A stretch of DNA of 64,000 nt from Mytilus californianus (taxonomy: Eukaryota): contig NW_026262745.1 in the NCBI RefSeq assembly GCF_021869535.1, positions 36,394,001-36,458,000 on the forward strand, in the 5' to 3' direction. A model generated the notes under the pieces. The model worked only from the letters and a program-made list of their open reading frames with translations, was not told the DNA's origin and searched no databases. The position numbers and the translations under genes were made by a program. Position 1 is the stretch's first letter; each line of letters begins with the position of its first letter. Shown piece after piece: positions 426-55,200 of the stretch.

Positions 426-1703
426 ATTAGGAAATCCGTTTCATATTTAATTTTTGAGTCTCATTTAGCCAGGCATCTACTGGAAATGTCATTGATTTTT
501 GTAAATGAACAACCGAAAGTTTCACCGTGCTTAAGATGTATCTTTTGTATTTTTAAAGTTATGGTGTATTTATTCTTGAGATAACTTCTCTTGTGTGTGC
601 CACATCATTCTCTCAATTTTAGGCCAGTTTTTATACTGAAATTTTAATAAGACGCACAGCACCTATTCTTAGCGCTCATCTCTATGTTAATTTTTTTTTC
701 AATTTCAAGCATTTATGGGGGGTCTATATATACCGTTATTTACGCAGACCGTACTGGTTACCGGAATTTTGGATGTATCAAATCAGGTACTTCATATCTG
801 AGAAACAGTCAATAAATGGCCCCTTTCAGATTAATTTATACTTTTTTGTATTATTCAAAATTTTTAATCAAAAGGTGTTGTACAAGGATCACCAGTCCTT
901 CACCTTTCATTTGATACCTAAATAACCAAAATATATTCTACATAGTTTGATATTTACACCAATGCGTAGGAACTATTTTGTTTTAGATATGTACTACTTT
1001 TCAGTATGTTTTTTTTTTTTTACCGGGCCCGATTTGGCGGTGTTACATCTTGCAAAGTCTGCCCGAATAATTGCAGTTTGCAAAGAATCCCGCTCAAACC
1101 TGTGCTAGGGGCCGTCTTAAACTTGCAGTGAGGTGAGAGTTTTTTTGCTCCTTGTTGATGGCCTCACTGTGAATTTGAGATAAAGAACAGCAATGAAAGC
1201 GCTGTTCCTTTGCTTTTTGTGTGTTTTTGCTGTGTGGCATGTCCTGATTTTGTGTCATGGATAAATACCCCATATCCTTTGTTTTCCTATTAACCTAGGC
1301 TTGTCTTTAACTGTTACCCTCAGCCTGTGACTTTGGGAATGATTCATTAGGGGACAAAACGGCCTCATTTATTTGCAAAGCAATAAACGAAAAATAATAA
1401 TGATAAACAATTACCAATGACAATCACTGGTTTACAGGTTACTGACTCGGAGCAATCCATGCATACAGAATGTAGCTTGGTTAAACATATTTGTGAGCGC
1501 TCAACCCTTCTCTAACCTTAAACAGCCTCAGTGATGTAACAGCACAACATAAGAAACAAATGCAATGAGCAGTTAAAAATGGCTTGACTCATCAGATCTA
1601 CACAAAGCAAAAAAAAAAACAATTAGCAAATAGACAAAAGATATAAAGTCCCGATGTAAGAGTACTCGAGGTTACTTTAGGCTATTACAAAACCAGTTAC
1701 AAC

Positions 1704-10352: not shown

Positions 10353-10667
10353 AGCGCCAACTCGTTCGTTATGCCCGTGTGTGTAGTAATGTCATAGATT
10401 TTAACGAACGTTATCAATGCATCACCGGTAAATTATTAAAAGTCAGGGATTTCGTTACCATAAATTTCTTAAAACTTTTACTAAATTCTTTCATAGATAC
10501 AAAAATTTGATTAGAAAATTTGGCTGTACCTGTAGAAAACTTATTAAAAACGGTATTTCACATCCTAAATTTTACGGTAATATTGTACCAGAGACATATA
10601 TACGTCTCTGATTGTACTAAAAGCACGGAAATCACTATGTTATCCGTGTACACTCATCGAACCTACT
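10353..10667 (+). mobile_element. Penelope-like retroelement RT C-terminal (thumb) fragment
   Basis: QLVRYARVCSNVIDFNERYQCITGKLL, then after one frameshift SQGFRYHKFLKTFTKFFHRYKNLIRKFGCTCRKLIKNGISHPKFYGNIV[insert]LKARKS; homologous to the peptide at 29464-29778. Confidence 0.85.
10589..10610. mobile_element. 22-bp palindromic micro-insertion with 7-bp TSD
   Basis: CAGAGAC-ATATATAC-GTCTCTG flanked by ATTGTAC at 10582-10588 and 10611-10617; removing the insert plus one TSD restores the PLE frame (GNIVLKARK). Confidence 0.85.
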
Positions 10668-11527
10668 CTTGTTTTTGACTTTTTGTCAGATATTCGGAAT
10701 CCTCTAGTTTTATCCATGTAGTGCCAATAAAAATTTTGCCTGCTAACCACTACTTTTCTTTTTATAATTTTATAACTTATAGTTTTTAAAGGCCATTTTT
10801 GAAAATCTTATAAAATCCTTGTTATTTTTTCATAGTTTTTGAGAGAGAATAAAAGGCGATGATAAATGTATGAAAAGTCTAGAGAGAATCATTTCCCGCC
10901 AAATTTTCAAATGATTATATCTTAAAAACAAGGAGACACGGACCTATAATTGTTTTTCTGCTTTTAAAGTACCGTTATTTATAAACTATCAATTTATAAT
11001 GGTCTTTTAAAAAGCTTGTTATTTTGAGACAGAGGAGCAAACATCCTTAAACAAACTTATTAGTAAAGGTTATCTTACCAATGTTAGATCTTTGAATATA
11101 GTTTACATTGGCACAAATATCGATTTTGTCATCAGCAAATTAAAACATAACTAAACTTTATTCTTTTCAAACGGTTTTTGGGGATGTATAAATGCACATC
11201 TACGTTCATTTTCTATATAGAGATTACTCTATCTATATTATACAATAACTATTTTTTGATGCGGTTAATATTGTAATTTATTCCATATTGGTATTATTTT
11301 AGTAGGTTTCTCTAAATTAATTGGATTTTGAATAAAAAAAGGTATATTCACCTGGAGAAAAGTGTTATTCACAGCGCGAAACGTCACGCGCTTTTACATG
11401 TAACGTTATGGTAAAATGTTTGATGTACAATTGGCTTTAGTAAATATTTGTCATTAAAAACATTGTTTTCTTTCGGAATATGGAATAAAACAATTCCTGT
11501 CTTTTGTTTCGGTAAATATGTGGTTTA

Positions 11528-11588
11528 ATTGACTTTTGAAAAACTGATATTCACTTCGGCCGTGAATATCAGTTTTTCAAAAGTCAAT
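11528..11588. repeat. Perfect 27-bp inverted repeat (7-nt loop) near the end of an AT-rich element
   Basis: ATTGACTTTTGAAAAACTGATATTCAC-TTCGGCC-GTGAATATCAGTTTTTCAAAAGTCAAT. Confidence 0.9.
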
Positions 11589-12240
11589 AAAACCGTTTAT
11601 ACATATTTATTAACAGGTTAACTCCTAACTATTCTTCTGCCTGTCGATACTTTTATTTTGGCATTGCACAAGTAATGTCTTCTTTGACTGTCCATGACGT
11701 TAAAACACTAAATCCCTGGGATGTGTTTTAGTTGATTTTAGTCTCTGGTGCATGATTTTTATTATTAATTGTTTTTGGCTTTTAACTAGCTTTCAGTAAC
11801 TGCGAGTACTTTCAAATCTCACTTTCGTGTTAATTTGACCTGTTGATACAATTTGTTATGTATTTTTGTTATTTAATGTTTACTTATTTAGTGTTATATC
11901 TCGTCTCACTATTTTTAATATATACCACCTTTCACAAGTGTTTAGTATGACCATGGAAGTAATATTTAAATTCAATATTACTTCCATGGTATGACGATAA
12001 ATTTTCACTTTTGTTCTCGTACTAGGAACAACAAAATTATTTATTTGGTAAAAATTATTTCCGTGCTCCATTTATACCTTAACACAAAATTATTTTTTAT
12101 TTACTTGTGTACGTTATTTTATTTGGCGGCATTTTGTCCAAGGTTATGATTGTCTTTCTGATATATTTTTTACATCTAACCCCCTTGTTTTATGAATTTT
12201 GTATTTACATTGTGTCATAGATCAAATTTATTCGTTCAGT

Positions 12241-12675
12241 GTATGTTCACTCGTTTTTGTTAATATGTCTTTTGATTGAGTTAAGCCATTGCAATTGATA
12301 TTTTATAGTGTGTCTTTCTGTGTTGTGATGTAACACTATTGTTCAGGTAGGGTGAAGGTTGGCGCCTATTAAAACGTTTAAACCCGCTGCATTTGTTTGC
12401 ACCTGTCCTAATTCAGGAATCTGATGTTCAGTGATTGTCGTTTGTTGATGTGGTTTATAAGTGTTTCTCGTTTTTTATATAGATTAGACCGTTGGTTTTC
12501 CTATTTGAATGGTTAACACTAGTCATTTTTGGGGCCCTTATAGCTTGCTGTTCGGTGTGAGCCAAGGCTCTGTGTTGAAGGCCGTACTTTGACCTATAAT
12601 GGTTTACTTTTACAAATTTTGACTTGGATGGAGAGTTGTCTCATTGGCACTAATACCACATCTTCTTATATCTAT
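12241..12675 (+). mobile_element. Abundant PLE-related dispersed repeat (family 2), copy A
   Basis: Roughly 90% identical by eye to 13624-14065; ends GAGAGTTGTCTCATTGGCAC...CACATCTTCTTAT, as do fragments near 8480, 15250, 21900, 25480, 30710, 40930, 57580 and 62750. Confidence 0.85.
12343..12424 (+). ncRNA. Predicted type-P5 twister ribozyme (family-2 variant; L4 carries a G>T change)
   Basis: TCAGG..GGGT-GAAGG...T^AA-ACCC-GC-TGCA/TGCA-CCTG-TCCTAATT-CAGG-A..CTGA; predicted cleavage between 12379 and 12380. Confidence 0.65.
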
Positions 12676-13623
12676 AGTTTTTCTTTTGCTTTTCTGAAAG
12701 CACATTATCAGAGCTATCTTCTCATATTTTATTTTAAAATTATATCGATTATTTTTTTCTATTCACACAAAATAAATATTTCCTAAATATAAAAAATCAA
12801 CAGTAGCTTGAAAATAGCACGATTTAAACTGCATTTGGGCAAAGTATAAAATACTTTAAATTTAGTTCCCCATTTACCTTAAACAAGGGATTTTTTATCA
12901 AACCTATCAACATTAAAATCTTCCATGGTTCCATAGAGTTTAATTTTCGAGTCTATTTTGCTGTGTGGACGCAGTAAAAATATATCCCCGTATTTTAGGT
13001 TTTCCTTGTGCTTATTTCATGTATGTTTTTGAAATGAAGCTTCTTTCGCAATGCACTCTGTCCATAGTTACGCTACTTCTTTGGATTCCATCTTAGGCAG
13101 AGTTCTTTTTTTTATACATCAGGGATATCTATTTCAATTGCAATCCCTTGCCATCCTTATTTTCATTGACAAATGGAATTTTCAGTAACAACTGTTGGTG
13201 ATCTTGATCAGTATACATGTATTTTGGGTGTTAGTACTTCCATAACAACATCAAATTGGAAATATTTTATGATTTAATTTTATAATAAATATTTACCTCT
13301 ATGTACATAATACGACACGTGACAAACAAATCGAAACATTGACTTTGTTCTACTCTTGATAAAATGACAGCATTTAAATTGAATTTAATCAAATACTTGA
13401 TACCACATAAGCACTTAAAATAAATGTTAACTGTTTGCAAGTTTTGATAACATGTATTAAGTAAATACAACATTTGCTTCTACTTGGTAATAGTAGAATG
13501 TCCGTTACCAGTCAATTTCTCATGTACATTTCCTTGTGTCAAAAAATAAAACTAGCACCCTGAAATGAAAAAAAAATGTCATTACTACTGTCGGAATCGA
13601 TAGTTGTTACTGGTATAAATCAT

Positions 13624-14065
13624 GTATGTTCACTGGTGTTAATATGTATTTTGATTGAGTTAAGCCATTTCAATTGATATTTTATAGTGTGTCTTTTTGT
13701 GTTGTGATGTTACACTATTGTTTCAGATAAGGGTGAAGGTTTGGCACCATTAAAACGTTTAAACCCGCTGCAATTGTTTGCACCTGTCCTAAGTCAGGAA
13801 TCTGATGTTCAGTAGTTGTCGTTTGTTGATTTGGTTCATAAGTGTTTCTCGTTTCTCGTTTTTTATATAGATTAGACCGTTAGTTTTCCCGTTTGAATGT
13901 TTTTTCACTAGTAATTTTTGGGGCCCTTTATAGCTTGCTGTTCGGTGTGAGCGAAGGCTCCATGTTGAAGACCGTACTTTGACCTATAATGGTTTACTTT
14001 TATAAATTTTGACTTGGATGGAGAGTTGTCTCATTGGCACTCATACCACATCTTCTTATATCTAT
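13624..14065 (+). mobile_element. Abundant PLE-related dispersed repeat (family 2), copy B
   Basis: Same 5' and 3' boundaries and orientation as 12241-12675. Confidence 0.85.
13723..13805 (+). ncRNA. Predicted type-P5 twister ribozyme (family-2 variant, intact)
   Basis: P5 TCAGAT/ATCTGA; P2 ACCC/GGGT; P3 TGCA/TGCA; P4 CCTG/CAGG; L4 TCCTAAGT, whose CCT complements the AGG of GAAGG; predicted cleavage between 13760 and 13761. Confidence 0.75.
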
Positions 14066-21584: not shown

Positions 21585-21935
21585 GTCATACTGTTACACT
21601 ACTGTCCCAGGTAAGGGGAGGGTTTGGCGCCACAAACATATTTAACCCCACCACATTTTCCCAAGTCAGGAGCCTGTAATTCAGTTGTTGTCGTTTGTTT
21701 CTGTATATAATATTTGTATTTCGTTCATTGTTTTTTACATAAATCAGGCCGTTAGTTTTCTTGTTTGAATTGTTTTACATTTGTCATTTCAGGCCTTTTA
21801 TAGCTTACAATGGGGTATGGGATTTGCTCATTGTTGAATGCTGTACGGTGACCTATAGTTGTTAACTTCTATGTCATTTGGTCTCTGGTGGATAGTTGTC
21901 TTATTGGCACTCATAACACATCTAACTTTTATATT
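21585..21935 (+). mobile_element. Family-2 PLE-related repeat with a partially deleted twister motif
   Basis: CAGGT..GGG-GAGGG-TTTGGCGCCA..TAA-CCCC..TCCCAAGTCAGG-A-GCCTG, with P3 and the 5' strand of P4 deleted; family-2 3' end present. Confidence 0.75.
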
Positions 21936-24693: not shown

Positions 24694-25050
24694 CGTATTG
24701 TTATGCGTTTACTTTTCTACATTGGCTAGAGGTATAGGGGGAGGGTTGAGATCTCATAAACATATTTAACCCCGCCACATTTTTGCGCCTGTCCCAAGTC
24801 AGGAGCCTCTAGCCTTTGTCAGTCTTGTATTATTTTTAATTTTAGTTTCTTGTGTACAATTTGGAGTTTAGTATGGCGTTCATTATCACTGAACTAGTAT
24901 ATATATTTGTTTAGGGGCCAGCTGAAGGACGCCTCCGGGTGCGGGAATTTCTCGCTGCATTGAAGACCTGTTGGTGACATTCTGCTGTTGTCTGTTCTAT
25001 GGTCGGGTTGTTGTCTCTTTGACACATTCCCCATTTCCATTCTCAATTTT
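24694..25050 (+). mobile_element. 5'-truncated 3' end of the Naiad-like PLE (family 1)
   Basis: 357 bp with about five differences by eye from 30061-30417; nested in another repeat. Confidence 0.9.
24724..24814 (+). ncRNA. Predicted type-P5 twister ribozyme (family 1)
   Basis: P5 GGCTAGAGG/CCTCTAGCC, GGGG-GAGGG, T^AA-CCCC-GC, CCTG-TCCCAAGT-CAGG; predicted cleavage between 24767 and 24768. Confidence 0.72.
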
Positions 25051-25301
25051 AACATCAAGATACGGCAAAAAAAAAAAAAACACACAAAAAGACAAGTCCA
25101 CAAAACACTACATAGAAAACAAAAGACTTGGAAACATGAACCCAACAAAATCCAGGGGTTTACTCAGGTCCTCTAAGAGAGAGCAGTTCCTGTTCCACAT
25201 GTAGCACCCATCGAAAGTTGCTGAAAGAAGTATATAGGAAATGCTTACCATTAGCTAATCTGTTAATATTTACTAACAAGGACCCCTCTTTTTTCCCACA
25301 G

Positions 25302-25405: not shown

Positions 25406-27608
25406 GTAAGTAAAATGTAAAAATCTTGAAACTTTGTACCTAACAGCTTCATTTCTCCATGTTAATATAAGGAGATGTGTTATGATTACCAATGAGAAAA
25501 CTATCTACCACAGACCAAAGGATGGGGTTGTGTAAAAAACTATAGGGCACCAAATGGCCTTCAACAATGAGCACAACCAATACCATAGAACAAGCTTTAA
25601 TAGGCCCCAGCATGACAAAACATGAAACAATTTAAAAGAGAAACCCAATGGCCTCATTTGTGCAAAAAACAATAAATTGAAAACAAAAATGAAAACTATT
25701 GAATTACAAGTTCTAGACTTGAGAAATGTACATTGTGACTGGTTGGATTACACATGTTTGTGGGTACTCCCCCCCCCCCCCTTTTTCCCCTAATACTGGA
25801 TGGTGTATGGGCACAAAAGAACAAATATTAAAAAAACAGTTTGAAATGGCTTGATGCATTTATTATGGGCAGCTAAGGGAGATAATCAGAAATTTTTATG
25901 CACACAAGTTAAATACTTTTTATCAGTATTAAAGTTTAAAGAAAACATGTGCATTCAGTTGTAAAACTGGCTAAAAAAAGGAAGAGGATAACAAATTTCC
26001 AAAGATATAATTTACTTAATTGTGTTATCTAGGGAAAAATGTGTAAGATTAAACGCTTTTAAGATTAGAACTAAATATAAGAAAGAGCTTTTTTATCCTA
26101 TGTGGCTAAAGTCATTGTGAGCTCTTGCTTTCATTTAGTGGCTGTGTCTGTCATGATCCTACTGTTTAGATTTGTCATTTTGATCGTCTACTTATGATTT
26201 ATATTTACATCAAAAACTTAAAGAAAAAACTGCACTGTGATTGCATAATTCCAATCCAAGTCCATCTAAGCTTCAAGAAAATATAAGGATGTGATTCTTT
26301 CTATCCAAGTCCATCAAAGTTTTTGAAAAAAGTTTTCTTTGAAGGTAGTCACTATGAAAAAATCCGTCAAAAACTTTGACCAAGAAAAATTGTACAAGAA
26401 AACTTTGATAGTGACCACTAGCCTTAATTTACTTCTTATATTTAAACTTAAGAAACTTAAAATCATAATTGTAATATGCTACTGAAATGAAAGGTTAATA
26501 TAAATGGGTTCGATAAATGTAGATTCCAACCTAAATAAGCATTAATGTGGTCTGCTGTCCTGTCCTATATTTTTGGTAATTGCTGTTATCCATTTACATT
26601 ACATCAACTTTATTTTCATAAAAATCTTTCAACAACTCGTGGTTTTCTGGTTCTTATTAATTTGACAATTTTAGACTAATGATTGGAAAAATTGAATAAT
26701 ATCATAATTATGTCATAGTAATTAAGATAACTTGATTAGCCTTGAACCCCAGCAAATGTGAAAATGATTGAACATGATGCCATAAGTGTGACCAGGTTAT
26801 TAAAATAAGATGGTATGGGTTTCATTTCATAATCCAGATTCATAATTATTTGGTAATTAAATGATATGATAAAGATATTTGCAGGATAAATTAATTAGAA
26901 ACTTGTTTAATTAATTACCTAAAGAAAGTGTGGTGAGGCTCAACTTCAGTTATGAATCTGATATGAGAGGAGGGTGACAGGGATGTGGGATATAAGGGCT
27001 TGAAAAAGAAGTGAGATCTGGGGAAAATAGTGGGATTTGTTTGAAGTTGTATTTGAGAAAAGAGCACCCCCAAGTTACCCCCTCTCCATATGTTTGATAT
27101 ATACCACCCCTCAAATGAAGTCCAACATGTACTACTACTAGAGTACTAGATGACCTCCCACTCTTCATAAATAATTGGAAGATGGTGTCAAGAAATATGA
27201 TGAAACTGACCCTCTGTGTGTATAATTATTTCAAATTAGTTCTAATTTGAATGATAAATCAAAATTATGTTCAAATTACAGATAAATATCTCTTTATTGG
27301 ACTTCATTCAGGTCAAGATTAAAAGTAATGGGGTTTTTCTAATATCTGTATCTACTCCATATGCCTTACACTGGTGTTATAAGTTTTGAAGGATCTGTGA
27401 CCAATGCATGTATTATGTATTAGTCACAGGTTGGATTTATCATAAAACAGTTCTTAAAGGAATATTGGATGTCAGTTTATAAAAATAAAATGTTTGGTCA
27501 TAAATGCTGTGAAAGGAGAATTAAGGTATATGTAGTCATCAATGAACCAGCAACCCAACAACACAATCAAACAAAATAGATATTTAATGGTAAAACAAAG
27601 AAGGAAGA

Positions 27609-28751: not shown

Positions 28752-29463
28752 TATACACCACACACAAAAAATCCAAAGATTGACAACCACACAAAGTACT
28801 AAAAACTAAAAACAGAAAAAGAGGAATGGCAAAATTTAGTACTATTTAATAAAGTGTATCTTTTAGTCCTGTTCTAGTCTGTGATTGCTCAAGATATCCG
28901 ACTGTCTTTTTAGCTCACCTGACACAAATGGTCATCACTTGGTGCCTGTCATTGTTGTCTGTTAACTTTTTCAAAAATCAAAAATCTTATGCTCTGAAAC
29001 TGCATGTCCAATTGGAACAAAACTTTGCCACAATAATAAGATAAGGGTTATCTAGTTAAGAAGAAAATATGTCCAATGATCCAACCTCAGCCACCTGCCA
29101 TGGCTTGCATGACTAAAAACAAAACATATTGGTAAAATGCAAGTTTTGCCTATTATCTTAGTTTCAGAAATGTTCAGAATAATGAGAACTACCTAATGAT
29201 TAGTTACATCAAAACTGTCAGACGACTTCTCATAGAACTTTTTGCAATGCAACATATTTAAGTCTTTTACGTTCATAGATGGCATAACTTGGTAATGAAG
29301 TTATTTTAGGGTAAATCATTATAGTGGGTATCTGCTGCAAACAAAAACTTCCCACAAAACTTGTGTTTGTATTCATTATTTTGTGTAGAATTTTAATTTT
29401 TGTGTTAAATAAGCATTAAGATGCAAATAAGTTCTTTAAATGCAGTTCATTTAGTAAAGCAGG

Positions 29464-29778
29464 TTATTACACCAGGGTTTTCGATATCACAAACTAGTCA
29501 AAACATTTACTAAATTTTATCATCGGTATAAGGACATCATTCGTAAATATAGCTCAACATGCAGACTTCTTATACGTTCAGGTATTTCACATCCAATTTT
29601 TTATGGAAATATTCTTTATAAAGCACAAAAATGTCAGTATTCACCTCTGAAGCTAACAAAACCTTTAAATAGACTTATTAAGAAGGGATATAGTTACGAT
29701 ACTGTTGTCAGGTCATTAAAGATTGCATATTTTGGCGTTAATATTGATTCACTTATAGGGTCTTTGCATCGGCACTAA
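29464..29778 (+). CDS. PLE reverse transcriptase C-terminal 104 aa (no ATG, absent from the ORF track)
   Basis: LLHQGFRYHKLVKTFTKFYHRYKDIIRKYSSTCRLLIRSGISHPIFYGNILYKAQKCQYSPLKLTKPLNRLIKKGYSYDTVVRSLKIAYFGVNIDSLIGSLHRH*; no internal stop. Confidence 0.85.
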   Translation, partial: LLHQGFRYHKLVKTFTKFYHRYKDIIRKYSSTCRLLIRSGISHPIFYGNILYKAQKCQYSPLKLTKPLNRLIKKGYSYDTVVRSLKIAYFGVNIDSLIGSLHRH

Positions 29779-29821
29779 ACACATTTATTTAAAAACCAGT
29801 TGTTGGCATGACACGGGTTAT

Positions 29822-29902
29822 GTTCTTCTCATATATGTTATGATGGTATGATACTAAACCCCTAACGGGAAGGATTGTGCCTGATATTCATATGATGAAG
29901 AC
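29822..29902 (+). promoter_or_regulatory. SECIS element (form II) in the PLE 3' UTR
   Basis: ATGA at 29840-29843; 12 nt to AAA at 29856-29858; helix II GGTATGAT/ATTGTGCC; apical mini-stem CCC/GGG; 3' TGAT at 29882-29885; helix I CTTC..ATATG/CATAT..GAAG. Confidence 0.75.
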
Positions 29903-30090
29903 ATAATCTTTCAATCAGTTTAATTGAAGTCTGGAGCTGGCATGTCAGTTAACTGCTAGTAGTCTGTTGTTATTTATGTATTATTGTCATTTTGTTAATT
30001 TTCTTTGGTTACATCTTCTGACATCAGACTCGGACTTCTCTTGAACTGAATTTTAATGTGCGTATTGTTATGCGTTTACTTTTCTACATT

Positions 30091-30181
30091 GGCTAGAGGT
30101 ATAGGGGGAGGGTTGAGATCTCATAAACATGTTTAACCCCGCTGCATTTTTGCGCCTGTCCCAAGTCAGGAGCCTCTAGCC
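30091..30181 (+). ncRNA. Predicted type-P5 twister self-cleaving ribozyme
   Basis: P5 GGCTAGAGG/CCTCTAGCC (9 bp); P2 CCCC/GGGG; GAGGG with the catalytic-G position at 30108; T^AA (predicted cut between 30134 and 30135); GC; P3; P4 CCTG/CAGG; L4 TCCCAAGT. P1 is atypical. Confidence 0.75.
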
Positions 30182-30584
30182 TTTGTTAGTCTTGTATTAT
30201 TTTTAATTTTAGTTTCTTGTGTACAATTTGGAGTTTAGTATGGCGTTCATTATCACTGAACTAGTATATATATTTGTTTAGGGGCCAGCTGAAGGACGCC
30301 TCCGGGTGCGGGAATTTCTCGCTGCATTGAAGACCTGTTGGTGACCTTCTGCTGTTGTCTGTTCTATGGTCGGGTTGTTGTCTCTTTGACACATTCCCCA
30401 TTTCCATTCTCAATTTTATTAAACAGCAAAATATTTAATCTCAAAATAAAGTTTTTGTCAAATATACATATAATTTGATGGTGAAATTTTTAAAAGAAGA
30501 CATTATTGAAGCAAGGTATGCTTCAATTAGACAGCAACTCAACAACAAAAAAAGCAAAAGGCATCGTTCTCTATTTAATTGTTT

Positions 30585-30745
30585 AATATTTTTCATGTCG
30601 GGGCCTTTTATAGCCAACTATACCGTATGGGCTTTTCTCATTGTTAAAGGCCGTACAGTTGCCTATAATTGCTTACATCCACTTTATTTGAACTTTGGTG
30701 GATAGTTGTTTCATTGGCAGTCATACCACATCTCCTTATTTTTAA
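30585..30745 (+). mobile_element. Family-2 repeat 3' fragment
   Basis: GGGCCTTTTATAGC...GGTGGATAGTTGTTTCATTGGCAGTCATACCACATCTCCTTATTTT. Confidence 0.75.
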
Positions 30746-39729: not shown

Positions 39730-40375
39730 TATTATTATTTCTGGAACAAATATTACAGTATTTATTCCTGACGAAATAAAGATTATAGAATATTTGTTCC
39801 AAGATGAACAGATATTATTGCATTGTTTACAACAACTTCTGTTAGGCAGACCGAACAAATATACGTTGCCAAACATACCTACATGTATAGACATTTTTTG
39901 ATTGACTTGTTTTGAGTTGGAGTAATTTTCCTTTCCCATCTTGTTGGTTTTCAGTATCATGTTTTAATTTGATAAGTCAAATAAGGCAATCAAAAGGTTT
40001 GCCCTCCAACATGGTAGCCAGAGGCAATGAATTACTTCTTATTAAAGGCTATCTATGGAAAACATTGAAGAACAAATGCTGAACTGGTTCTAAGGATAAC
40101 AAAATATTTTTTTCATGTGGTATAGGGATCAGTTGATACATGCTCCTTGGATTTTAATGTGTTCTGAATATGAGAGGGTTTGGTCATTGCACAGATCTTC
40201 ATTTTTTTTTTTTTGTGTTTTCTGATGAAAAACAATATTTCTTCTTTTTTTCAGAAAGAAGACTTTTTATAAATTGTCTAAGTTATAAACTGAGAAACTT
40301 TTGAGGAGATTGTCAGCAAAGAAGGATTTCAGTATTCACTTGACTTCAAATTTTAAGAAGGTAGTCAGAACATGT

Positions 40376-40795
40376 AAAATTAAGAATGGAAATGGGGAAT
40401 GTGTCAAAGAGACAACAACCCCACCAAATAGCAGAAAACAGCGCAAGGTCGTAATGGGTCTTCAACAAAGCGAGAAAATCTGGCACCCAGAGGTGGGCTT
40501 CAGCTGGCCCTTAAACAATAATGTATACTAGTTCAGCAAAAATGGACGTCACATTAAACTCCAAAACATATAAATGAACCAAAATTAAAAAACATACAAG
40601 ACTAACAAAGGCTACAGGTTCCTGACTTGGGACAGGCGCAAAAATGCGGTGGGTTAAACATGTTTCGTGAGATCTCAACCCTCCCTTATACCACTAGCCA
40701 ATGTGGAATAAACAAACACACGGCAATATGCAGTGAAACTCAGTTAAAAAGAAGTTCGAGTCAGATGTTTTAGATAAGGTCAAACAAAAATAAAA
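40376..40795 (-). mobile_element. Older family-1 PLE 3'-end copy, including a twister motif at 40610-40699
   Basis: The minus strand reads GGCTAGTGG..GGGAGGG-TTGAGATCTCA..AAACATGTTTAACCCACCGCATTTTTGCGCCTGTCCCAAGTCAGGAACCTGTAGCC. Confidence 0.85.
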
Positions 40796-52255: not shown

Positions 52256-55200
52256 AAGGGTAAAAAACATCATTAAAAAGATCAAAATAAAATAGCTAGA
52301 ATATATAAGATGGCCAAATAAGTCGTCACTTTTGTGTTGTTGAAGTTGTAAAAAGTGAAGTAACAAAAATACCGAACTCCTAGGAAAATTCAATGGAAAG
52401 TCCCATATAAAATGGCAAAATCAAAAGCTCAAACAAATCAAACGAATTGAAAACAACTGTCATATTCCTGACTTGGTACAGGCATTTCCTTATGTAGAAA
52501 ATGGTGGATTAAACTTTTTTGTTGTGTATTTACATCATTTGATCAAGTTAATAAGTTAGAATGACATTTTGTGATTTTGAAGTCAATTGTTGCAGTGGTA
52601 GTTTGATGAGAGTATATCAACAGGGTAACTTTATGGGTGAAAAATCAATAAAATAGAACAGAATGAAATAACTGGAATATCAGTGATGGCTTAATAAGTT
52701 AGAATGACATTTTTGTAATGTTGCAGTTTTGACATTGTACATACACATGTAATGTCTAATGCTGATCAGTCAAGTTCTATTGGTTTAAGGTGATCTCTTT
52801 TGATGTTTCATTTTAGATGAAGGGTTGAATTACTTTTGACTGTGGGAAATAAGTTTATAAAGTCTAGAAACAAAGTGTCCAGAATATCAGTGTTGTCAGA
52901 TTTAGTAGGAGTCAAATTAGATTGTATTTTATATAGTTTGTTTGATATCTTTTGATCTGTATTACACCCTGCCTTGTCTGGTCCGGTATAATTGGTAATT
53001 AGGAGATGTTCAGTTAAAATTAAAAAGATGAAATAAACTATCATTTCAGAAAAAAAAGATCCTGCAGTTTATTTTGGTTTGAAAAGCCTAAGATCTTTTA
53101 TCTCGCAGCCACAAATTATCATCCATAAATTCATAAGATCATCATCCAAACATTTAAGGAACCAATTTTGAGGGGTGTGTGGGAGGCAATTTGTTGAAAT
53201 AATTATTCAATTACATGAGAAATTAAATTAGTTTATAAAGTGTGTTGAAGTTTTTTTGGCTGGATTATTTTCTTGCAAAAGTTACAGAGAAATAATCTCA
53301 AACAGGTGGTTGTTTGATTTTCATACAGGGGTAGCTGTTTACCACCAACCATGCATTTCGTGGAAGTAATAATAATCAAAAAATTGAATAGTGTTTAAGT
53401 TGTGTTCATGTTGTTTTGCTGTTGTTTTTTTTTTTCTTAAATTACAGAGAAAATTATCTCTGACAGGTAGTTGTTTTATTTTCATACAGTGGTACCTGTT
53501 TACTACCTGCTGTGCCAATTGTGGATGAAATTATTGTGATAAACATTCTGAAATTTTTATAACTTTATCACAGCTAGAAAAGACAGTAAAATGTTTTGTT
53601 GACACTTTTTATCAAAATTTTGAATGTTTTTATGTTTTGAATGGTTCTGATGTGATAATTGTACTTTGACAAAGGGAGATAATTGCTTTGATTATTACGA
53701 GTTTCTTCGCTTCACAACCTGTGATCACCAAAGAATGTTTTTGGTAAATAAAAACTTATGTAACAGACTTTCAAAGACCAAGTACTAAGTGCAACCAAAA
53801 GAAAATTAGAGCTATTTTCCACCTTTTTGAAATGAAGCACATAGATTTTCATTTTTAACCTGTTTGATGATTGTTAGTATTGGTTCTATTATATATATTA
53901 AAAGTCATTACCAATTTTGAATTAGAAGGAAAACCTTTATATCTGAAAAATAAACTGTAAAAATCTTTAAACATTTATTATTTAATTTAAAATTTTTAAC
54001 AAAATAACAAATGTTTACTACTGTTTTTCGATATTAAATGAAAATGCCTTGTGGACAACACAGGATTAGACCACATATCATTAACAATAGATTTTATGAC
54101 TTTGACAATGCTTGTTACAATTTTTTAATCCCACTGGAACCAGATTTGGGATTTTATGTTTAAAATTGACATTTTGATGTGTTTTTGAATTAAAATGTTA
54201 AATTTTACATTGTAGTTTGGAAATAAAAATTGTATTTTTCTCCAAAGGAACATTGTTGTTCCAACATGGCATTTTCATGGGTTTACACATGTTTTTATGG
54301 GGTACTATTTATCTATAGATTTTACAAGATAAGTTTGAGAAACAATAGAATTGAAAGTATGACATTTTCATGTGCAGTAGCCTGTCTCTTTATGGTAATT
54401 AAACAACAATGCAATTTACAATACATGATAATGATAATTGCTTTCGATGACATTTTCGTGTGATTAAACTTCCCTAATACATGAATATAAATTATGCAAA
54501 AAATAAATGCTGTAATTTTCTCAACAGTGCAGCATGTTGCTTGATCCCACTCCCACTATGGTTTATGAATTGGATAGGTATTTCACAAGTCAAGGTAATT
54601 ATCAGAATTTTTGTCACTCTATATTAATCATTTATGTTTTTTTTTAAATTTTTATTGTGAGAGTTGATTTTATAAAAATTTTATAGTTTGATATGAGGTT
54701 TGAAATAAATCTTAAATGTGAAAGGTCCAAACTCACAACAGTTACTTTAAAATTAGGGTCTATAAAAAAAAGGGTTACAATAATTGTATAAAGTATATAG
54801 TTTAAAAGGGTGCTTAGTTTGTCTTCTTGTAGAAGAATTCTCATTGGTTATTACCCATTATTGAGGATTCAGTGATTATTAGCAAACTGGAATGACATCT
54901 TTTAGGCTTTAAGTAACTTGTTGACCATTTTAATGGCAGTCATACAACTTTTTAATGTCCAAACAACACTTTCTTTTTCTCTCCCCAGCTCAATTTGACA
55001 AGTCAAATAATAATTTTTAGCTTACATAAACAAGTTAACATCAATTTTGTAAAAGCCTTGATGTTTCATTCATTAAGTAAATATAACCAAATGATTGGCT
55101 CATATCTTGACAGAACATTGTTGGCAACTGTGTACTTATTGATAACTTATTTATAAATAGGCAAAATTGACAACTATAAGAATGAAAGACAAGAATAAGA

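Follow-up and report, generated by a model that had tools for sequence, protein, structure and literature searches.

The window analyzed here is a stretch of 64,000 nucleotides (64 kb) from the genome of the mussel Mytilus californianus (assembly GCF_021869535.1, contig NW_026262745.1, positions 36,394,001 to 36,458,000 of the forward strand). Positions 29458-30420 of the window host the 3' part of a Penelope-like element (PLE) of the Naiad clade. This is made by the end of an open reading frame (ORF) encoding a reverse transcriptase (RT), and by a 3' untranslated region (UTR) in which a probable selenocysteine insertion sequence (SECIS) is followed by a motif of the twister class. The component parts, and other elements of the same kind found in the window, are listed in Table 1.

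Frame 1 from position 29464 is open for 105 codons and ends with TAA at 29776-29778 (translation), and the region 29458-29775 is 96% identical (tblastn) to the final residues, 897-1002, encoded by a longer copy with the full ORF. Nothing protein-like is found 3' of the RT stop codon in the 29464-30420 copy, in agreement with a sequence-only reading of this DNA, in which an uninterrupted RT C-terminus, ending at 29778 with no GIY-YIG domain after it, had been noticed. The 5' boundary of the copy falls at 29458-29464, the sequence upstream of ~29458 being unrelated, and homology to other copies stops at 30417-30421. The 1.65-Gb assembly yields over 1272 candidate matches to the 29464-30417 segment, the best 40 of which are 99-100% identical, as expected of a very young and abundant repeat. 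The upstream reach of the other copies varies, and their 3' end is always found at the equivalent of 30417-30421. Scattered 5' ends and a common 3' end denote the 5'-truncation pattern of target-primed retroelements. By its sequence, the 29458-30420 copy is a 5'-truncated, dead-on-arrival insertion, and the Naiad-clade PLE from which it comes is very abundant and was recently active.

Table 1. Naiad-type element copies, and their component parts, in the 64-kb window
Feature	Position	Strand	Basis or remarks
Truncated Naiad ORF end: last ~106 codons of RT/thumb and TAA	29458-29778	+	translation, tblastn
Probable SECIS in the 3' UTR, 52 nt past the stop	29830-29894	+	Rfam SECIS_1
Type-P5 twister-class motif, ~200 nt past the SECIS	30091-30181	+	Rfam Twister-P5, own model, covariation, published domain table
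P5	30091-30100 with 30172-30181	+	
P2	30104-30107 with 30137-30140	+	GGGG/CCCC
L1, 3' side	30108-30112	+	GAGGG
Pseudoknot T1	30110-30112 with 30160-30162	+	
Region in place of P1	30114-30135	+	two perfect palindromes
First palindrome	30114-30123	+	UGAGAUCUCA
Second palindrome	30124-30135	+	UAAACAUGUUUA; runs into the predicted scissile U30134/A30135
L1, 5' side	30134-30136	+	UAA
L2	30141-30142	+	GC
Pseudoknot T2	30141-30142 with 30165-30166	+	
P3 hairpin	30143-30154	+	UGC-AUUUUU-GCG
P4	30155-30158 with 30167-30170	+	CCUG/CAGG
L4	30159-30166	+	UCCCAAGU
Rest of element tail, to the 3' end of the insertion	30182-30420	+	homology between copies
Second, older Naiad-Se copy	10358-12675		RT ~70% nt identity; genomic copies 86-93% alike
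RT end of the older copy	10358-11152		interrupted by insertions
SECIS of the older copy	11686-11749		36.5 bits, above threshold
Twister motif of the older copy	12332-12436		tail end at 12675
Tail-only 277-bp family	13623-13900		twister motif 13723-13805, predicted site U13760/A13761
Decayed tail fragment with twister-like core	24694-25051	+	
Decayed tail fragment with twister-like core	40375-40768	-	
Decayed tail fragment with twister-like core	21595-21689	+	
Decayed tail fragment with twister-like core	1422-1529	-	
Decayed tail fragment with twister-like core	25694-25800	-	
Decayed tail fragment with twister-like core	52452-52550	-	

Anatomy of the Naiad-Se element

Naiads are recognized by a CX2-5CxxC finger, a KR-rich block, the CxC and GxKF/Y motifs, and the change of DKG to DKA (Craig et al. 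2021, PMC8557442). The full anatomy of the mussel element was read from natural longer copies residing in the genome, and not from a consensus. The family unit measures ~4.02 kb, and neighbouring tandem copies are spaced 4020 bp. Long copies open with a partial copy of the tail (pseudo-long terminal repeat, pseudo-LTR), followed by a leader of ~370 nt and an ORF of ~1002 codons. The N-terminus, located before the RT, reads MKLRNGK...IIYLLTUNKPGCGIQYVGETG...ELNWIKKLQTVYPLGLND (U, selenocysteine, Sec), and features the GIY-YIG core. A CX4-U-xx-C finger, read as DKCHAKKULTCP, comes before this core, and the KR-rich block RKNRSHGRRKNRNQRKFR after it. The linker motifs are CxC (SCNCS), next GPKY, next DKA (PADKAANNIIIVU). 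The RT motifs LPKLHK, FDFSTLYTTLPH, GIPMGTNCAP and FRYLDDIL are found in the full ORF (motifs A-C present), which stops 5 aa past ...SLHRH, with no C-terminal nuclease.

Neither the RT nor the GIY-YIG domain of the full ORF protein has a direct match in Pfam, and the element protein found no match in a sequence search of the PDB. A database relative (P0177) aligns with the N-terminal piece from end to end (E 5e-68), and its matching stretch passes the Pfam GIY-YIG threshold; more than 3243 homologues of the RT piece were retrieved in the protein search. No hammerhead family of Rfam was found at E <= 10 in the interval 29300-30700, and none at gathering threshold in the window. Insertions are 5' truncated or arranged in partial tandems (pseudo-LTRs), and the unit falls within 3.4-4.4 kb, as in Naiads.

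In-frame TGA triplets are found at codons 55, 86, 97 and 522, and are common to three independent long copies. They mark, in the order, the second Cys position of the CX2-5CxxC finger, the Cys position preceding the GIY-YIG motif, the first Cys position of CCHH, and the Cys position 8 residues after DKA (DKA+8). Codons 86, 97 and 522 are exactly the positions published for clam Naiad selenoproteins (PMC8557442). The N-terminal GIY-YIG, CxC, DKA, the C-terminal RT, the pseudo-LTRs and four UGA codons at published cysteine positions together show, at the sequence level, that the element is a Naiad-Se PLE. The Naiad-like assignment made earlier from the truncated copy has thus been upheld by full-length relatives, which feature the N-terminal GIY-YIG, CxC, DKA, four in-frame UGA codons and no C-terminal endonuclease. 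What the same reading stated of Craig et al. 2021 (the Naiad architecture, Sec in clams and spiders, no canonical hammerhead) is accurate as well (PMC8557442).

The SECIS-like fold had been placed at 29822-29902. The whole SECIS_1 model of Rfam is matched at 29830-29894, with 31.7 bits versus a gathering threshold of 35 (E 5.6e-4 in a 1.4-kb search), and the core features AUGA, apical AAA and UGAU are all present. The 81-nt fold has a z of -3.4 versus shuffles, and the SECIS elements found at the equivalent place in relatives score 34.5-42.8 bits, those of sister families 36.5-42.8 bits. The SECIS would recode the four UGA codons as selenocysteine.

The Naiad-Se elements described in clams and spiders (Naiad_Mmer, Naiad_Scon, Naiad_Sdum, Naiad_Smim; PMC8557442) share with the mussel element the N-terminal GIY-YIG, CxC, DKA and a C-terminal RT without trailing nuclease. 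They also share pseudo-LTRs, 5' truncation, a unit within 3.4-4.4 kb and the lack of hammerheads. UGA is found in both at the Cys before GIY-YIG, at the first CCHH Cys (the clam pattern) and at DKA+8, and the SECIS, a probable one in the mussel element, is located just past the stop. The host is different, being a mussel (one protein match is named Mytilus edulis), as is the fourth Sec, which corresponds to the second Cys of the CX2-5CxxC finger, where Sec has been reported only in spiders. The SECIS of the mussel element lies 52 nt past the stop, and no twister is reported for the clam and spider elements in that paper.

Two of the loci analyzed, L037 and L038 (G000:C154:8.34-8.37 Mb), are element copies residing within a long satellite array, in which BLAST offsets are multiples of ~56 bp.

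A selected twister-class fold behind the SECIS

Read from the cleavage site, the motif found behind the SECIS (Table 1) features, in the order, U^AA, P2 CCCC, GC, P3, P4 CCUG, L4 UCCCAAGU, P4 CAGG, AG-[P5]-UAUA, P2 GGGG, GAGGG and UUGAG. This order matches block by block the published twister domain table (PMC8501958). The ends of the motif lie in P5, which makes it a type-P5 permutation, and the predicted scissile bond U30134/A30135 is found where the twister architecture puts cleavage. L4 is expected as GUCCCAAGC, and is read as GUCCCAAGU at 30158-30166.

Of 4227 Rfam families, Twister-P5 (RF02684) is the best for the interval 30080-30190. The full model aligns to 30104-30170 with 23.3 bits (E 0.0024, on a 111-nt region picked after the fact), and the blocks GAGGG, UAA, GC and GUCCCAAG are matched. 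Points are lost in the unpaired 21-nt P1 segment and in the 12-nt P3 hairpin. At gathering threshold, no twister is found by Rfam in the window, the sole match being the SECIS at 11686-11749, and in the 1.4-kb search at E <= 10 the twister was missed owing to speed filters. The search of the whole genome with RF02684 found no match, but its control was empty too, so the result is uninformative. The motif and RF02684 are permuted alike (ends in P5, continuous P1 side), and have the conserved nucleotides in common. They differ in the P1 segment, unpaired over 21 nt in the mussel element, and in P3, a hairpin of 12 nt where the model expects few bases.

A covariance model (R1) was built from eight instances of the motif, taking into account nested helices only. 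The model assigns 121.9 bits to 30091-30181, and detects 74 motif instances in 339 kb of genome, which include at least 8 families widely different in sequence. Pseudoknots T1 and T2 were left out of the alignment model and added for pair counting, so that the alignment cannot lean towards them. In the resulting alignment (A2) 83.4% of the cells are paired, versus 71.9 +/- 0.7% in shuffled alignments (none of 500 shuffles reaches the observed value). The covariation score is 0.355, versus 0.182 after shuffling and at most 0.065 when partners are slid, and changes on both sides are found at 19 of 26 pairs.

The motif is also found in other assemblies. Seven loci from five other public assemblies were picked solely by protein homology to the RT piece (47-62% identity). 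In six of them the motif resides on the same strand, 250-330 nt past the RT stop, with E values of 1e-13 to 1e-5. In alignment A3, which takes in these outside loci, fetched by protein alone, the paired cells are 83.4%, versus 66.7% after shuffling. The covariation score rises to 0.502 (shuffled, 0.219; partners slid, at most 0.10), and both-sided changes mark 22 of 26 pairs, including all the P3, P4 and P5 pairs and two of the four P2 pairs. T1 is 85-91% paired, and two of the three pairs that make it have G-C swapped for A-U or U-A; in T2, paired at 96%, changes are mostly one-sided.

Complementary residues are replaced in various ways in the different helices. T1 is found as GGG/CCC, AGG/CCU, UGG/CCA and GGU/ACC; P2 as CCCC/GGGG, ACCC/GGGU and CCAC/GUGG; P4 as CCUG/CAGG, ACCG/CGGU and AUCG/CGAU. 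P3 stems measure 3-7 bp, and their sequences are unrelated between families. P5 is made by at least six unrelated complementary sequences (GGCUAGAGGU/GCCUCUAGCC, UCAGAU/AUCUGA, CUGUCAUA/UAUGACAG, GGCUGUUGCGG/CCGCAAUAGUU, and others). The register of P2 and L2 is ambiguous in the family group featuring the UACCAAGU loop type (e.g., L025:1374-1486). The loop blocks are nearly invariant, while the surrounding helices vary. Compensatory changes in helices combined with nearly fixed loop blocks denote a functional tertiary fold of twister type, rather than a chance hairpin. On these grounds, the alignments show that a selected twister-class fold lies behind the SECIS, in which P2 to P5 and T1 have been kept by compensatory substitutions.

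A chance resemblance to twister, arisen in a repeat devoid of selected structure, would account for the low Rfam score and for the lack of matches in the whole-window run, as in the whole-genome run with its empty control. The covariation is however far above that of shuffled and slid controls, also for a pseudoknot unused in the alignment, and the motif was recovered in loci chosen by protein homology alone. We therefore find this explanation hardly credible. The twister-like fold of the sequence-only reading (30091-30181, site U30134/A30135) has its conserved blocks matched and covariation far beyond chance. As to the comparison with the Rfam Twister-P5 model, by which that reading was to be checked, the family is indeed the top one over the full model, with a score lower than the threshold.

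The order RT stop, SECIS, twister is conserved in diverged Naiad-Se families of the mussel genome, including the older copy of the window, and of other assemblies. SECIS_1 matches are found at the ORF end in 4 outside loci, and 3 of 5 matches are above threshold (39-42.8 bits). U is found at DKA+8 in five outside loci, and the same four-Sec N-terminus in one relative, 62% identical. The seventh outside locus (L068) has neither twister nor SECIS; its ORF is partial and organized differently. At another locus (L065, from an ENA assembly) Cys is found at DKA+8, yet two SECIS matches and two twister motifs, ~845 nt apart, mark tandem tails; such a lineage may be intermediate between the use of Sec and that of Cys.

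Palindromes, pairing and cleavage

The segment located between GAGGG and the cleavage site hosts two perfect palindromes. An ordinary P1 hairpin was searched for in this interval and rejected, since no register goes beyond G-U/A-U/G-U. The predicted energy of the 30114-30135 segment is 0 kcal/mol as monomer, and -15.6 kcal/mol as homodimer; across families, homodimers are predicted at -13 to -25 kcal/mol. Two perfect palindromes reside at the same two places in every family, and their sequences differ. The first is UGAGAUCUCA, UGGUACCA, GGCGCC, UGAGCGCUCA, UAGCUAGCUA, UGGCUAGCCA, GGGAUCCC, AGGUACCU or AUGGCCAU, according to the family. The second, which adjoins the scissile U, is of the form AAAC-xx-GUUU, its centre being self-complementary (AU, none, CG or UA). 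The symmetrical change of the palindrome centres points to selection acting only via a duplex between two strands. We infer that the palindromes mediate RNA pairing, either of two molecules or of two tail copies of one read-through transcript; a role in DNA is possible.

Data can be read assuming that the tail of this Naiad-Se element carries, next to the SECIS, a putative self-cleaving twister, perhaps activated by pairing, and we regard this view as reasonably probable. The twister would cut between U30134 and A30135, and would do in Naiads the job done by hammerheads in the pseudo-LTRs of other PLEs. Cutting would trim read-through or tandem transcripts to unit-length RNA, and the SECIS would stay on the piece bearing the ORF. 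Since the palindromes cannot fold within one strand, an isolated copy would probably have little activity, and the pairing of two tails would turn it on. Two RNAs could pair, or, within one RNA, the 3' tail with its upstream pseudo-LTR, in resemblance to the minimal, dimer-dependent hammerheads of other PLEs. Single parts of this view deserve separate consideration. Ribozyme activity of the motif is probable. That P1 has been traded for two dimerization palindromes, cutting being confined to paired tails and dimerization or packaging thereby coupled to processing in a Sec-recoding element, is proposed tentatively. Dimer-gated cleavage as such, suggested by the palindromes and by analogy, is an attractive idea of lower probability.

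Raw reads from four RNA-seq runs, corresponding to two organism labels, were mapped onto one natural long copy (L047). Depth is ~200-900 in the tail and ~5-100 in the ORF, the tail being 5-50 times deeper. These and other data provide several points that weigh against a self-cleaving twister. The canonical P1 stem is absent; no family has a hairpin in the 21-22 nt that separate GAGGG from U^AA, the folds predicted there being unstable (0 to -2.5 kcal/mol). The RF02684 score (23.3 bits) is lower than the gathering threshold (37.6), and the match is seen only when the 111-nt stretch is searched. The last base of L4 is U, not C, so that one T2 pair is G-U, and P3 of the 30091-30181 copy has U-G where most copies have C-G. 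In the four runs, reads neither begin nor end in a pile-up at L047 405/406 (listing threshold, 1/5 of local depth), and depth is equal just before and after the predicted site. Continuous depth without end pile-up indicates that most steady-state RNA carrying the motif is uncut, which speaks against a constitutive cleavage of high efficiency. Every DNA copy extends to 30417-30421, ~285 nt past the predicted site, and therefore the template of reverse transcription was not cut at its 3' twister. At the equivalent of 30418-30421, 47% to 76% of reads continue into unrelated flanks. Since these reads derive from truncated copies residing within other transcripts, both orientations being represented, a cleavage that is partial or conditional would have escaped notice.

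Several of these points would fit a twister descendant that is no longer, or was never mainly, a ribozyme. The motif would be a structured tail recognized by the RT or the nuclease in target-primed reverse transcription, the palindromes would serve dimerization or packaging, as a retroviral dimer initiation site does, and cleavage would be negligible. The absence of cleavage signs in RNA-seq, the missing P1, the Rfam score under threshold and the continuation of DNA copies ~285 nt past the putative site all favour this explanation. So does the residence of the motif in the 3' tail kept by every truncated copy, the usual place of stringent RT recognition elements. The active-site blocks (U/C-A-A, GAGGG-type L1, GC L2, YCCNAAG loop) are however near-invariant amid freely changing helices, a pattern expected of catalysis and not of a mere protein-binding scaffold. 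Moreover, according to literature quoted in PMC8501958, twisters devoid of P1 keep some activity. We deem a purely structural tail unlikely. Of the retroelement originally envisaged, able both to recode UGA and to self-cleave, the pairing of SECIS and twister recurs in diverged families and stands. Self-cleavage in the stead of the hammerhead has to be worded with caution, P1 being missing, the Rfam score sub-threshold and RNA-seq end pile-ups absent.

The hypothesis that the cleavage site coincides with the 5' end of DNA copies found no support, as 5' ends are scattered, and short families start ~75-140 nt upstream. Many fragment starts were observed in 3 of the 4 runs at L047:73-76 (29802-29805 in the window), in the interval between stop and SECIS (6-12 molecules at a depth of 24-48). 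They could mark the start of a transcript, the limit of a subfamily, or a point at which copies are commonly truncated. At L047:449 (30178 in the window) G replaces A in 402 of 410 RNA reads of one organism label; the U-A pair of P5 is changed to U-G, and is still paired.

Ribozymes have been found in other retroelements. Hammerheads reside in the pseudo-LTRs of canonical PLEs, where dimers are the active form (Cervera & de la Pena 2014; Lunse, Weinberg & Breaker 2017; both as cited in PMC6765202). As far as that citation goes, the likeness includes a small ribozyme motif carried by a PLE in its terminal repeat or at its 3' end, a palindromic closing helix too short within one molecule, suggestive of function in pairs, and the presumed role, the cutting of tandem transcripts to unit length. 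Within the same limits, the mussel element differs in having a putative twister, two palindromes instead of one short helix III, and in belonging to the one animal PLE clade reported as ribozyme-free. In Schistosoma mansoni, twister variants have been identified at the 5' end of non-LTR retrotransposons (Perere-3/RTE), and shown to cleave both in reporters and in vitro (Liu et al. 2021, PMC8501958); twisters in RTE/Perere-3 long interspersed nuclear elements (LINEs) are noted also in PMC7761336. These feature, as the mussel motif, a core carried by a retrotransposon, the blocks UAA, GC, GUCCCAAG and GAGGG followed by UUG, and a weak or variable P1. Perere-3/RTE twisters are of type P1, lie at the 5' end of LINEs, and derive P1 in part from the target-site duplication. 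In contrast, the mussel motif is predicted to be of type P5, resides in the 3' UTR or pseudo-LTR of a PLE, and has palindromes for P1.

Naiads were described as lacking canonical hammerheads by Craig et al. 2021, and the word twister is absent from that paper (PMC8557442). Among the papers searched (subscription journals fall outside the coverage), none pairs twister with Naiad, or links twister to bivalves or to PLE carriers. PLEs are known for the hammerheads in their terminal repeats, and Naiads, dominant in many invertebrate genomes, have been singled out as devoid of them, which raised the question whether ribozymes matter to PLEs. A conserved twister-class motif at the equivalent place would suggest that some ribozyme class is needed, and not the hammerhead specifically. 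Twister biology would be extended from LINEs to PLEs, and tens of thousands of twister-like sequences missed by the Rfam model would be added. The palindromes found in place of P1 provide a directly testable model of dimer-gated cleavage; if the latter were true, this would be a second, independent pair-activated ribozyme in PLEs, from a different ribozyme class. With the tails, SECIS elements are also spread over a bivalve genome, a fact of relevance to the possible origin of new selenoprotein genes.

Other Naiad-Se tails in the window

Twister motifs are found in at least 9 instances in the window. The second Naiad-Se copy (Table 1) proved to be one element when a private insertion (11258-11596) was set aside by comparison with other genomic copies. 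The 277-bp family is made by tails only. It includes more than 1738 candidate copies, of which the best 40 begin at one shared base, and hence it looks like a discrete non-autonomous element, rather than the product of random truncation. No tRNA-derived head was found in this family.

Short elements of this kind raise the hypothesis that the ribozyme is primarily a module of non-autonomous, tail-only elements (the 277-bp family at 13623-13900, the ~360-bp tails as 24694-25051), parasitic and of no benefit to the autonomous element. Craig et al. 2021 speculated likewise on hammerheads (PMC8557442). The large number of candidate copies with one 5' boundary in the best 40, as the excess of tail over ORF RNA, are in line with it. 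The motif is however found also within the 3' UTR of autonomous copies with open frame, and its distance from the RT stop is unchanged in at least 6 diverged autonomous families, in several assemblies, which indicates that it is an integral, vertically kept part of autonomous elements. A parasitic module, which overlaps the other explanations and is compatible with them, seems to us quite improbable.

Decayed tail fragments vary in their state. A 98%-identical fragment has mutations in P3 and in the second palindrome, an 82%-identical one has two mismatches in P5, and a further one is devoid of P3 and of half of P4. Residues 15681-15826 of the window are a run of 146 N.

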